Positions 7,501-57,255 of a stretch of 64,000 nt of DNA are shown here, in pieces (position 1 is the stretch's first letter; the number at the start of each line of letters is the position of its first letter). The translations under genes were made by a program, and so were the position numbers. The notes beneath the pieces were generated by a model. That model did no database searches. It was not told where the DNA came from and was given only the letters and a program-made list of their open reading frames with translations. The stretch covers positions 10,664,001-10,728,000 of the forward strand of contig NC_086113.1 in assembly GCF_963921235.1 (NCBI RefSeq), given 5' to 3'. The stretch comes from Mobula hypostoma. Its lineage: Eukaryota.

Positions 7501-8503
7501 CATTTGAACAATCCCGGTGAACGTTTTGTTCAACACTTTTCTCTTGAAGTACTGTAGTGTTTATACACCAAATGCACATGTAGATACATGCACGCTTTAA
7601 TGAAGAGTGCTGATGCAATAACAATCACTCCCACGCACAATTACTGTGAAATCCTTCAAAGCTAAGATATGGCGTTGTGCTCTTCTGTTGGGATTTTCTT
7701 TGCAAGAATATCAAAATTAAATCTATAAATCATCTCCCTGAATACATACTCTTATGGCTGTGTTCTTCCCTTTCTTTTAAGCAGGGGTAATTTACTGAAA
7801 GCAGAAATCAGGAGACTGTTGGTGTTTCCTATCCCACTAGGTGTAGACGCTGTTGTTCTTTACCGCATTTAAAATAGTCAGAGAAACACTATTCCAGAGA
7901 CTGATTTCTGATGTTTCCCTAGTCTACACAAGCTAAGAAAAAGGGACATTATGCTTGTACAATGAAAAAAACCCAAATGGAGAACTGAATGAAAAAAAAA
8001 ATCTATTCTCACAACTGTTATTTACCTATCTAAATTACAATGTTCATCTACATATAAAACACATTTACTGAAATAATAATTTGTTATTCTGTTTCTTATT
8101 TTCGCATCTGTCTTCTAATCACTGTTGATCGAGCTATTGTTAAATACGTGACGCAGAGCCATTTTTTCATGTGTTAGACTATATGAAATATGCATGCATA
8201 ACTATATCCTGTAACCTAATACGGTTCTCATTGGGCCACTAATATTCTATTAGAACCACCTCTGTTATAGTTCAGAACTGATTTGGTTGTTTGTAACTTT
8301 GCTAGCACAGTCGTCGGATCTCCAGGGAGTTTTTTGAACTAAAGTCGTTTTCTATTGGCCAGACACTGATCAGCTGGTTATATTTGCTGCTGTCGCTTTG
8401 GCGCTCGGCCATCCTGAAACAAACCACCTCGATGACTACTAATAGCTAAACCACATTGTGTACTAATACATAACAAATCATATTACTACAGAGTGTGGAG
8501 CAA

Positions 8504-53695: not shown

Positions 53696-55645
53696 GGTGG
53701 GGTGGGAGACTTATTCACCGGGTCCTTGGGAAATCTGCATCACTATTTTCCTTTCACGGTCGGGTAGAATTGCTTTTCTTTGCAGAATTCAATACGTTCA
53801 TAAGGCGTTACAACATTATTTCCCCCTTTAAATCCATCTTTCTTGAGGAGGCAGCGTCCTCTGCACTGATTGTTCAACCCCAGAGAATAAAAATGGCGGA
53901 GCTGTTTGTTACAGTAAAGCTTTCCATTTGTTTGAACTTGCTAGCACATGGAAGGCGGAAAAATGTACTAATTGCAGCTTCTGATTGCCGCATATTACGT
54001 GAGGGGAAAGGGTGTATTTTTTAAAGGAATACAGGACGGGAGAGATTATATTTTAAGATGAATCAACAAAGCGTACTATTGAAACCAGTTAAAAAGAAAT
54101 TTTGATAACCTTTGAAACAAAGTATCTCGCATTTTCCTCGATACTTTATAATTCGATATCGATATTAAGCAGTGTTTGAACCATATTTAAATTTAAAGTG
54201 GAGCTTTGCTGAAGCTAATCGATAGACTGCAGAATTATTTTTGTTTTACAAACATTGAGTATAATAATTCCTTAGTTTGGGGCAAATGTTATCCGGCAAT
54301 TTTCATCATATTCTTCATTTAATAACGTATATTTATTATACTCAAACACACAGGCCGTAAATAGCAACGACCACCTCACTGCCATATCTAAGTAAATATA
54401 ATACTGCGTTTGATTGATTTGAAAAGATTGAATGTTTCCTAAAGTCTAAAGGAACATATACTTTCATTGTTGGCAATCTCCATGCTGATGCTCTGGAGCA
54501 AGTACCGAAATGGTCCCAGTTTTCCTCGTCCTGTCGTTATTCCCCAGTTCTACAGTGGGATTAGAATCCGCCGCTTGACATAATTAATTATTCCGAGTAA
54601 ATTATTGTCTGTAAACCTGATCCACGTCGGTCTGTAATGCGCAAAAGATTGATCTGAAATTCTGACCGACCCTCTCCGCTTCGAGAGGCCTCTACAGGAA
54701 GCTGACAGATGGCCGGCAGCGCCTTCGAATCGACCGCGTTTGCCTGCATTATGCTACGGCCAAGTGGAGTTATTATTCATAACTGTGTGTTAAAAAAAAA
54801 TGTACACTCTGATTCCCGCAACAAACAGAATAAATAGGCAGGCCGCCAATACAAGGAAGATCCTCTGGCTGCTTGTAATCCTTTCGTGAAGGGAGGGGGT
54901 GGGGGGCTGCTCCCAGCAGCCTGTGTTCGATGGAAGGGGTTGCTCATTTCCATGCCAATAGCTGGAACGCAGAGGATAGACGCAGGCCAGGCCTTGATAG
55001 GCTGCGGTGACATTCGTGCACAGTGAAGACATGGCGCCTCCTTTTACAATCGGACGCCACACCACACACAGCTTAATTATAAATATCTACATCATACACC
55101 CTTCAGTCCAATTAATCATTTTGCCCGCTGCTTTGAGGTCGTCCCTTATGCCTCACGGATTAGCACTGAGGGCAGTATCAGTCACTGTCGATCCTGTGCA
55201 GATCGAACAGCATCAGTTACCTGTATTAAAGTGCAAGAACCAGAGTAACACATAATAGGTTTCGCACAGACTTTCCCGACCTAAGACTGCAGAGCTGGGC
55301 TCCAATATAAAAATTAAAACATTGTTCTCCCACCCTGCTATATCTGAGGCACTGGCCAGAAAATAATTAATCCCATAGGTCAACAAAAACACGACCCTCC
55401 CCTCGAGAGTTTCTTAGATGCTAAGTTTTAATATTATCAGCGAGTTGCTTTCCTTACCTGTTTGCGAGGCTGCTGTGCGGAAGAAGGCGGACATCTCCCC
55501 ATTGTAGACGTGCGATCGGCGCTTACACTAATACCGTAGCAGACCCGAGCAAAGCAGTACGTGCATCTTGAATAAATTCCTGCTGCATTCTGCCGGGCAT
55601 GCTTTGAAGTATAATGCATTCGTGGGCTAATAATGTTCGCAACCT

Positions 55646-55751
55646 TGATGGAAGAGCGTTTGTAATTTAAATGCCACTACAGTGATCGATCACCGCCAAG
55701 AGCATGCAAACTTCGCAGCGAGCATCGCAATTGGCCAACCGGAGTCACGTG
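55646..55751 (+). promoter_or_regulatory. HoxA1 proximal promoter: ARE-like block plus CCAAT/E-box
   Basis: TGATGGAAG-TTTGT-ATTTAAAT-TGATCGAT (55646-55690), ATTGG (55730) and GTCACGTG (55744). Confidence 0.65.
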
Positions 55752-55871
55752 GCCACACTTCACTGTATATTGATATAATTTTCTTTCAGCTCTATTGAGG
55801 AAGTGGGGAAGTTGGCACGGTCCATCCAGGTTGGTGGACAGTCACTTTATATGCTGGTTATCCCATGACAG

Positions 55872-56496
55872 ATGGACAATGCAAGGATGAACTCCTTTCT
55901 AGACTATTCCATCATTAGCGGAGACACTGGGACTTGTTCTTCTAGAAGTTACCATGCAGAGCAAGGAATTACAACTTATCAGTCTTGTGCCGTTGGCAAT
56001 AATAATAGCAACGTTGATGAGCGCTATATCGTGAGCAGAGGTGTCCAGATAAGTGCTCCTCTTCATCATCACCACCATCAACATGCCAGCTACACACATA
56101 ACAACCTGGGCATTCCTTATAGTGCCCACCCTAACTGTGGGACAGGATACCCAGCACAAAGCTTTAACACAGGCTATAGCCATCACTATTCACTGAACCA
56201 AGAGACTGATGGCAACGGAGGTTATCCTCAGTGCAATCCTGCCGTCTATCCCGGAAACCTCGCCTCAGCAATTAGCCCGCAGCACCATGGCTTTGGCGGG
56301 ATGGTGGGAGCAGGCCAATATGCCCATCACCCTTACAGGCAGGAGCATCAGAGTTTGGTGCTCGCTACAGGCTGTCACCCTATGTCACCCGTTCCTGGCA
56401 CTCACCAGGAGGCTTGCTGCTCCCCGTCAGCCGAAACCTCTCCGCCAGCACAGACCTTTGAGTGGATGAAAGTGAAGAGGAATCCGCCAAAGACAG
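55872..56496 (+). CDS. hoxa1: Hox-A1 exon 1 (join 55872..56496,56903..57255; 325 aa)
   Basis: Starts [12 protein letters not shown], has a His tract and [14 protein letters not shown], donor G|GTGAGT. Confidence 0.97.
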
Positions 56497-56902: not shown

Positions 56903-57255
56903 GGAAGGCTGGTGAGTACGGCTTTGCCGGTCAGCCCAACACGGTGAGAACCAATTTCACCACCAAACAACTCACCGAGCTGGAGAAGGAGTTCCACTTC
57001 AACAAGTACTTGACCCGGGCCAGGCGGGTGGAAATCGCTGCTGCCCTCCAGCTTAACGAAACGCAGGTAAAAATTTGGTTCCAGAACCGACGCATGAAGC
57101 AGAAAAAGCGCGAAAAAGAGGGTCTTACCTCAGCTTCTCCGGCCACACCTGGAAGTGAAGCAAACACAGAAGACGCTTCAGACAAATCAAGCTCTACCTC
57201 GTCGACCCCCTCCCCTTCATCATCTACCTCAGAAACTCTCAATACTTCAGGCTAA
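56903..57255 (+). CDS. hoxa1: Hox-A1 exon 2 (homeodomain)
   Basis: Acceptor TTTAG ends at 56902. Contains [46 protein letters not shown]. Confidence 0.97.

Follow-up and report, generated by a model that had tools for sequence, protein, structure and literature searches.

Hoxa1 and Hoxb1 are the textbook example of regulatory subfunctionalisation following genome duplication: Hoxb1 kept its autoregulatory element, the b1-ARE, and Hoxa1 lost it. Repeat 3 of the b1-ARE (TGATGGAT or TGATTGAT) is the key site for its activity in rhombomere 4 (r4). The labial autoregulatory element of Drosophila is Hox/Pbx-dependent and also lies upstream of a group-1 Hox gene, and Tvrdik and Capecchi (2006) reportedly knocked a 107-bp b1-ARE into the mouse Hoxa1 promoter. 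That the ancestral Hox1 gene regulated itself is established thinking, and this ancestral state has so far been inferred from function, by way of the mouse knock-in and the Hox/Pbx elements of the fly and of Ciona.

The b1-ARE adjoins the Hoxb1 promoter and drives expression in r4, and binding of SOX and OCT proteins is needed for its full response to HOX/PBX (PMC9286507). For this element, PMC9286507 and PMC3261376 cite Popperl et al. 1995, Di Rocco et al. 2001 and Ferretti et al. 2005. Pbx-Hox sites have the accepted consensus TGATNNAT (PMC3261376); Labial-class proteins prefer TGATTGAT (PMC8846413). In Ciona, the 1UP1.4 fragment of CiHox1 is active in r4 of the chick and is responsive to Hoxb1 (PMC3227721), so self-regulation of Hox1 arose before the vertebrate duplications. 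The duplication-degeneration-complementation account (summarized in PMC2213666) has an ancestral Hox1 gene with an ARE that then degenerated at Hoxa1; in the mouse, autoregulation of Hoxa1 is described as degenerated, and the gene is not maintained in r4 (PMC2213666). In mouse ES cells, PBX, TGIF and PREP are found near the Hoxa1 promoter, and after retinoic acid MEIS, PREP1 and HOXA1 are recruited; according to De Kumar et al. 2017, the occupied region ‘may provide auto-regulatory input’ (PMC5580710).

Here, we describe the promoter of HoxA1 in a ray, Mobula hypostoma, and compare it with those of HoxB1 and of other HoxA1 genes. We consider it reasonably probable, from the motifs and alignments set out below, that positions 55627-55751 and the b1-ARE with its proximal promoter are ohnologues, descended from one module upstream of the single ancestral Hox1 gene, with a proposed input from TALE and Hox1 proteins. 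The base-by-base alignment dates the module before the split of HoxA from HoxB, and it reveals the order in which sites decayed at HoxA1. Neither this base-level alignment, nor the intact repeat 2, Sox and repeat 3 sites of cartilaginous-fish HoxA1, nor the inverted repeat 3 of tetrapods was found described in the literature searched; Tvrdik and Capecchi 2006 lies outside that literature, and may show a Hoxa1 remnant. The study of chondrichthyan Hoxa clusters by Mulley et al. 2009 (PMC2746220) makes no mention of Pbx, Hoxb1 or autoregulation, HoxA1 is not treated by Natale et al. 2011, and the same search turned up nothing on expression, binding or reporter activity for HoxA1 of any chondrichthyan.

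The HoxA1 promoter of the ray

The window, by which we mean the whole 64-kb stretch of M. hypostoma DNA that was analysed, contains an open reading frame that begins at 55872 and encodes the N-terminal part of HoxA1, with the homeodomain exon downstream. Splicing of 55872-56496 to 56903-57255 yields a product of 325 amino acids, identical to Hox-A1 of Mobula birostris at 323/325 positions and to that of Hemitrygon akajei at 320/325, which marks the animal as a myliobatiform ray. The motif string occupies window 55646-55711, 226-161 bp 5' of the ATG. Its second and third repeats (R2 and R3) lie at -226 and -189 from the ATG, compared with -234 and -198 in HoxB1 of the same genome, and it adjoins the promoter, upstream of the presumed transcription start. 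The initial annotation had placed these strings about 200 bp upstream of the HoxA1 ATG; all are where it put them, and the reading frame is indeed that of HoxA1. The features are as follows:

55627-55635, plus strand: columns homologous to repeat 1 (R1) of the b1-ARE (alignment columns 31-39), degenerate CTAATAATG vs the invariant AGATTGATG of HoxB1
55644-55756, plus strand: match to a profile made from HoxB1 promoters only, ARE-type module plus proximal promoter (profile positions 45-158, R2 to E-box)
55646-55654, plus strand: R2 equivalent, a Pbx/Hox-type site, TGATGGAAG; HoxB1 has TGATTGAAG
55658-55663, plus strand: Sox-type core GTTTGT (TTTGT at 55659-55663); HoxB1 has CTTTGT or TTTTGT
55665-55672, plus strand: motif at the octamer position, ATTTAAAT, a HoxA1-specific derivative of the HoxB1 octamer ATG(C/T)AAAT
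55682-55693, no strand assigned: R3 equivalent (core TGATCGAT at 55683-55690), within the perfect palindrome GTGATCGATCAC
55704-55711, plus strand: ATGCAAAC, within the conserved block (C/A)AAAC-TTCGCAG; aligns with HoxB1 TGACAAAC (gar, bird)
55730-55734, minus strand: CCAAT box (ATTGG on the plus strand), 47 bp after R3
55746-55751, no strand assigned: E-box CACGTG, 16 bp after the CCAAT box
55872-56496, plus strand: coding part of HoxA1 exon 1, from the ATG to the splice donor
56903-57255, plus strand: coding part of HoxA1 exon 2, with the homeodomain and stop codon

The sites differ in how closely they resemble those of HoxB1. R2 matches that of gar HoxB1 at 8/9 positions, and is the same in the HoxA1 promoters of ray, skate and chimaera. 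R3 fits the Pbx/Hox consensus on both strands; its core departs from HoxB1 at position 5, with C in place of G or T, and keeps the G at position 6. The motif at the octamer position, followed by GCCA in ray HoxA1 and likewise in ray HoxB1, is invariant in all seven HoxA1 promoters sampled; it matches ATGCAAAT at 6/8 positions and lacks the ATGC half. A reading of it as a TATA box was considered unlikely, because the CCAAT box lies some 60 bp downstream. The columns that correspond to R1 match at 5/9 positions and are without the TGAT-NN-AT consensus. R1, which the initial annotation had called unrecognisable here, cannot be recognised in any of the seven HoxA1 sequences, and is present in all four of HoxB1.

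The string ATGCAAAC at 55704 had been annotated as a near-octamer, and we rejected it as a second octamer: it is not conserved in chimaera, which has GTGCGAAC, and so the octamer reading is unsupported; moreover, the string aligns with a different HoxB1 block, TGACAAAC/TCACTAAC. The E-box CACGTG is present in 9/11 promoters, with one-base variants in chimaera and echidna. No TGACAG/CTGTCA site for Meis/Prep adjoins the HoxA1 element. The Meis/Prep consensus TGACAG does occur at window 55866-55871, abutting the start codon (position -6); the hexamer is at -6 in skate and echidna HoxA1 too, and at -20 in Xenopus, and its placement at -6 could be a coincidence of start-codon context.

Comparison with HoxB1 and HoxD1

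A search of the whole genome (3.48 Gb) with the HoxA1 homeodomain exon found two further group-1 genes, on contigs C91 and C18. The former (locus L013) has FDWMKVRRNPPKT and is HoxB1, and the latter, the product of which starts MNSYLEY, is HoxD1; these identities are based on the exon-1 products and the surrounding clusters. Upstream of ray HoxB1 is a canonical ARE, comprising AGATTGATG (R1), TGATTGAA (R2), TTTTGT-G-ATGTAAAT, and TGATTGAT (R3), followed by CCATTGG and GTCACGTGA. When the 400 bp upstream of ray HoxA1 and HoxB1 are compared, a local alignment of 58 columns emerges that starts 231 and 239 bp before the respective ATGs. It scores 52 vs 18.6 +/- 2.2 for shuffled sequences (about 15 standard deviations above them), a score that 0/500 shuffles reached. 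Bases outside the motifs are also common to the two, namely AAATGCCA, GATCACC and AAAC-TTC.

To these we added promoters from other vertebrates. The HoxB1 promoters compared were those of ray, thorny skate, spotted gar and turaco (a bird); the HoxA1 promoters were those of ray, thorny skate, elephant shark (a chimaera), turtle, echidna, Xenopus laevis and tarpon. The eleven sequences can be aligned from R1 to beyond the E-box with no difficulty, and none gives a sign that the HoxA1 and HoxB1 strings arose independently. An nhmmer profile built from the four HoxB1 promoters only has a single match in the 64-kb window, at 55644-55756, with an E-value of 3.2e-14.

Gar HoxB1 reads TGATTGAAG tgtc TTTGT c ATGCAAAT ...10 nt... 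TGATGGAT, and bird HoxB1 is equivalent; except for one octamer base, this is the mouse b1-ARE layout that the initial annotation had given. R2 and R3 are 37 bp apart in HoxA1 of ray and skate and in HoxB1 of gar and bird, 36 bp in HoxB1 of ray and skate, and 40 bp in HoxA1 of chimaera. The real b1-ARE is thus not spaced differently, and the common order and spacing of motifs proposed at the outset are borne out. Further downstream, R3 and the CCAAT box are 46-48 bp apart in the nine promoters, HoxA1 and HoxB1 together, in which both motifs are matched, and the CCAAT box and CACGTG are 15-18 bp apart.

As had been noted, the bases of the spacers have diverged. With the HoxB1 sites taken as the reference, between chondrichthyan HoxA1 and the four HoxB1 promoters the site columns (R2, Sox, Oct, R3, CCAAT and E-box) are 83% identical and the spacers 46% (single-pair Fisher p 1e-3 to 9e-6), a contrast that is partly post hoc because CCAAT and the E-box were added after the alignment had been viewed. 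For HoxA1 of bony vertebrates, the corresponding figures are 69% and 42%. In the HoxA1 element we have a genuine, ancient paralogue of the b1-ARE with its promoter, and cartilaginous fishes have it in its most complete form; homology of the two modules is as well supported as it can be from sequence alone; with the profile match and the alignment score, this upholds the earlier proposal that the element is older than the split of HoxA from HoxB.

HoxD1 of this genome has only the GATTGG...CACGTGA core in common with the other two genes. A joint profile matches there with an E-value of 0.008, and local alignments of HoxA1 with HoxD1, and of HoxB1 with HoxD1, do not rise above shuffles; an ARE relic at HoxD1 was rejected.

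Three other observations concern these promoters. First, a CCAAT box followed 15-18 bp on by CACGTG is common to ray HoxA1, HoxB1 and HoxD1 (window 55730-55751; L013 6487-6508; L014 2917-2956, minus strand), and occurs in most orthologues, from gar to bird, with one-base variants in tarpon, chimaera and echidna. This CCAAT/E-box core, common to all three Hox1 paralogues, looks like a Hox1 core-promoter signature that predates the cluster duplications. Second, 65-90 bp upstream of R2, ray HoxA1 (window 55565-55580) and HoxB1 (L013 6297-6311) share a further short block, ATCTTGAAT(A)AATTCC, which recurs in HoxA1 of skate and chimaera and in skate HoxB1; strings resembling GAATAAATTC and GGATAATTC occur in HoxB1 of gar and bird. 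Its local alignment score of 25 was reached by 10/1000 shuffles, and is weak. Third, long GT/CA-type microsatellites occur upstream of HoxB1 (L013 1980-4300) and in its intron (7882-8406), which is unusual, because the inside of a Hox cluster is normally poor in repeats.

Conservation and decay among HoxA1 orthologues

R2, TTTGT and R3 are identical in HoxA1 of ray, skate and chimaera, so that the motifs are kept in chondrichthyans other than the ray. Across the seven HoxA1 promoters, the sites compare as follows:

R1: not recognisable in cartilaginous fishes or bony vertebrates
R2: TGATGGAAG in cartilaginous fishes (3/3); TGATGGAGG in echidna and TCATGGAGG in turtle; lost in Xenopus and tarpon
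Sox core: TTTGT in 3/3 cartilaginous fishes; absent in 4/4 bony vertebrates
Octamer position: ATTTAAAT in cartilaginous and bony HoxA1; ATGCAAAT or ATGTAAAT in HoxB1
R3: TGATCGAT in cartilaginous fishes; TGATCCAT in turtle and echidna; CGATCCAT in Xenopus; TGATCTAT in tarpon

The six positions of the Sox core match at five in the three chondrichthyan HoxA1 promoters, and at two in all four from bony vertebrates. The latter keep ATTTAAATGC, CCAAT and CACGTG, with a one-base exception each, and an R3. Persistence of the module in a slow-evolving lineage, which the initial annotation had proposed, thus holds for an intact R2 and the Sox core, found in cartilaginous fishes only, and not for R3, the octamer-position motif, CCAAT and CACGTG, kept in bony vertebrates as well. 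Of the composite Sox/Oct site, the Sox core TTTGT is there in cartilaginous fishes, and the Oct half is degenerate in every HoxA1. Because the octamer is changed in every HoxA1 sampled, the gnathostome ancestor already had an altered Sox/Oct composite; the HoxA1-specific states are shared by cartilaginous and bony lineages, across about 450 million years, and the change therefore predates their split.

R3 has a history of its own. In a palindromic frame, the site is GGTGATGGATCACC in skate and gar HoxB1 and the perfect palindrome GTGATCGATCAC in ray, skate and chimaera HoxA1. In turtle and echidna HoxA1 it is GGTGATCCATCACC, the exact reverse complement of GGTGATGGATCACC. In Xenopus HoxA1, TGAT on the plus strand is broken, and the minus strand still reads TGATGGAT. 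This canonical group-1 Hox/Pbx site is perfect on the minus strand in 3/3 tetrapod HoxA1 promoters (at about 2821-2834 of locus L017, 2766-2779 of L023 and 2831-2844 of L021). The inverted site may account for the binding of TALE proteins and HOXA1 that has been published for the region near the mouse Hoxa1 promoter.

Over the 230 bp from -330 to -100 relative to the ATG, element included, ray and chimaera are 89% identical, so conservation within chondrichthyans alone cannot demonstrate selection on the sites. It is the comparison of paralogues, as we read the alignments, that reveals such selection. The whole 330 bp before the HoxA1 ATG (window 55540-55870 vs L015 2665-3000) is 86-89% identical between ray and elephant shark. 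Within it, a long block at about 55550-55625 has no counterpart in bony-vertebrate HoxA1 or in HoxB1, and may be a constrained element specific to chondrichthyans.

Proposed function and relation to known systems

How might the ray element work? It is probably Hox/Pbx-responsive. In the mechanism we propose, R3 would be occupied by a group-1 Hox protein along with TALE proteins (Pbx with Prep/Meis), as would R2, though less strongly. Help would come from a SoxB1 protein at TTTGT and from NF-Y and bHLH factors at CCAAT and CACGTG. HoxA1 would thereby gain a positive auto- or para-regulatory input atop its activation by retinoic acid. The homology, the integrity of the sites and their conservation across cartilaginous fishes and, in part, all jawed vertebrates sampled are matters of observation; that these proteins bind, that the input is positive and that it acts in rhombomere 4 we infer. 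For cooperative binding of Hox1 with Pbx and Prep/Meis, the mouse ChIP-seq results near the Hoxa1 promoter (PMC5580710) are indirect support.

The ray element retains more of the ancestral sites, and so may still give positive feedback. In its strongest form, this proposal says that HoxA1 of cartilaginous fishes is still autoregulated, and that R2, the Sox core and the palindromic R3 together respond to Hox1/Pbx and keep the gene on in rhombomere 4. We offer it tentatively, and regard it as somewhat doubtful. The missing R1, the altered octamer, the C at position 5 of R3 and the lack of an adjoining Meis/Prep site argue against function fully like that of the b1-ARE, and, with mouse Hoxa1 not persisting in r4, an R3-type site is evidently not enough by itself. 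If the proposal is true, then ray, skate and chimaera would exhibit the state before subfunctionalisation, the one reportedly rebuilt artificially in mice by Tvrdik and Capecchi. Loss would then have been stepwise: the octamer first, in all HoxA1, and then the Sox core and R2 in bony vertebrates, leaving the inverted R3. The three cartilaginous fishes would be natural ‘intermediate’ alleles.

The most durable of the other explanations accepts the homology and holds that the job has changed. On this account the element would be a relic, now a general promoter-proximal platform (TALE ‘priming’, NF-Y and an E-box factor) poised for induction by retinoic acid, with neither Hox feedback nor r4 specificity. 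This is quite possible, although we do not favor it. The loss of R1 and the alteration of the octamer in all HoxA1 since before cartilaginous and bony vertebrates diverged are in keeping with it, as is the presence of PBX, PREP and TGIF near the Hoxa1 promoter in mouse ES cells before Hoxa1 is expressed, with paused polymerase (PMC5580710). So, too, is the R3-type site that mouse Hoxa1 keeps in the amniote pattern (that of turtle and echidna), yet autoregulation there is described as lost (PMC2213666). However, R2 and the Sox core were kept in cartilaginous fishes and lost in bony vertebrates, which is easier to understand if the extra sites still act, and occupancy of the mouse region by HOXA1 rises upon differentiation (PMC5580710). 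Were the element inactive, it would be a clean case of a disused enhancer that stays recognisable for a long time in slowly evolving genomes.

Descent itself could be questioned in two further ways, both of them very improbable and both rejected. The HoxB1 ARE might have entered HoxA1 of the ray lineage by recent gene conversion or transfer, as the exact occurrence of AAATGCCA in both genes of the ray might suggest. But ray HoxA1 shares ATTTAAAT (not ATG(C/T)AAAT) and TGATC-N-AT (not TGAT(G/T)GAT) with chimaera, turtle, echidna, Xenopus and tarpon, which rules out such an event, and ray HoxB1 groups with HoxB1 of skate, gar and bird, for example in its intact R1. Alternatively, short motifs might have come together in an AT-rich promoter by chance or convergence, with no relation by descent to the b1-ARE. 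This is conceivable because single motifs are short and common (TGATNNAW alone occurs about 16 times in one 10-kb locus), but is dismissed, as far as sequence evidence goes, by the score of the ray HoxA1-HoxB1 alignment, by the pattern TGATKGAA-N24-32-TGATNNAT, which occurs once in the 64-kb window vs 0.03 times expected from dinucleotide-preserving shuffles, by the HoxB1-only profile, and by the eleven-promoter alignment, with its shared non-site bases and its conserved spacing to CCAAT and CACGTG.

We return, then, to an ancestral Hox1 module with proposed TALE/Hox1 input, and to how it compares with the systems described at the beginning. The b1-ARE and the ray element both belong to group-1 Hox genes and adjoin the promoter, some 190-230 bp 5' of the ATG, and both have R2, TTTGT, the octamer-position motif and R3 in the same order, with CCAAT and CACGTG downstream. 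Unlike the b1-ARE, it has no R1; its R2 is TGATGGAA rather than TGATTGAA, its octamer ATTTAAAT rather than ATGCAAAT, and its R3 the palindromic TGATCGAT rather than TGATGGAT or TGATTGAT. It is also without the TGACAA-type block after R3.

The Ciona and Drosophila elements resemble that of the ray in having Hox/Pbx-type sites upstream of a group-1 Hox gene. No alignable similarity is claimed for them, whereas the similarity of ray HoxA1 to HoxB1 can be followed base by base. The mouse region bound by TALE proteins and HOXA1 is, like the ray element, proximal to the Hoxa1 promoter, and HoxA1 of turtle and echidna carries the orthologous R3, GGTGATCCATCACC, which reads TGATGGAT on the minus strand. 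The amniote copies, in contrast, are without an intact R2 or Sox core, and De Kumar et al. 2017 (PMC5580710) is not known to link the mouse region to the b1-ARE. Finally, the duplication-degeneration-complementation account of Hoxa1 and Hoxb1 concerns the mouse; HoxA1 of ray, skate and chimaera fits it as a less degenerated state.
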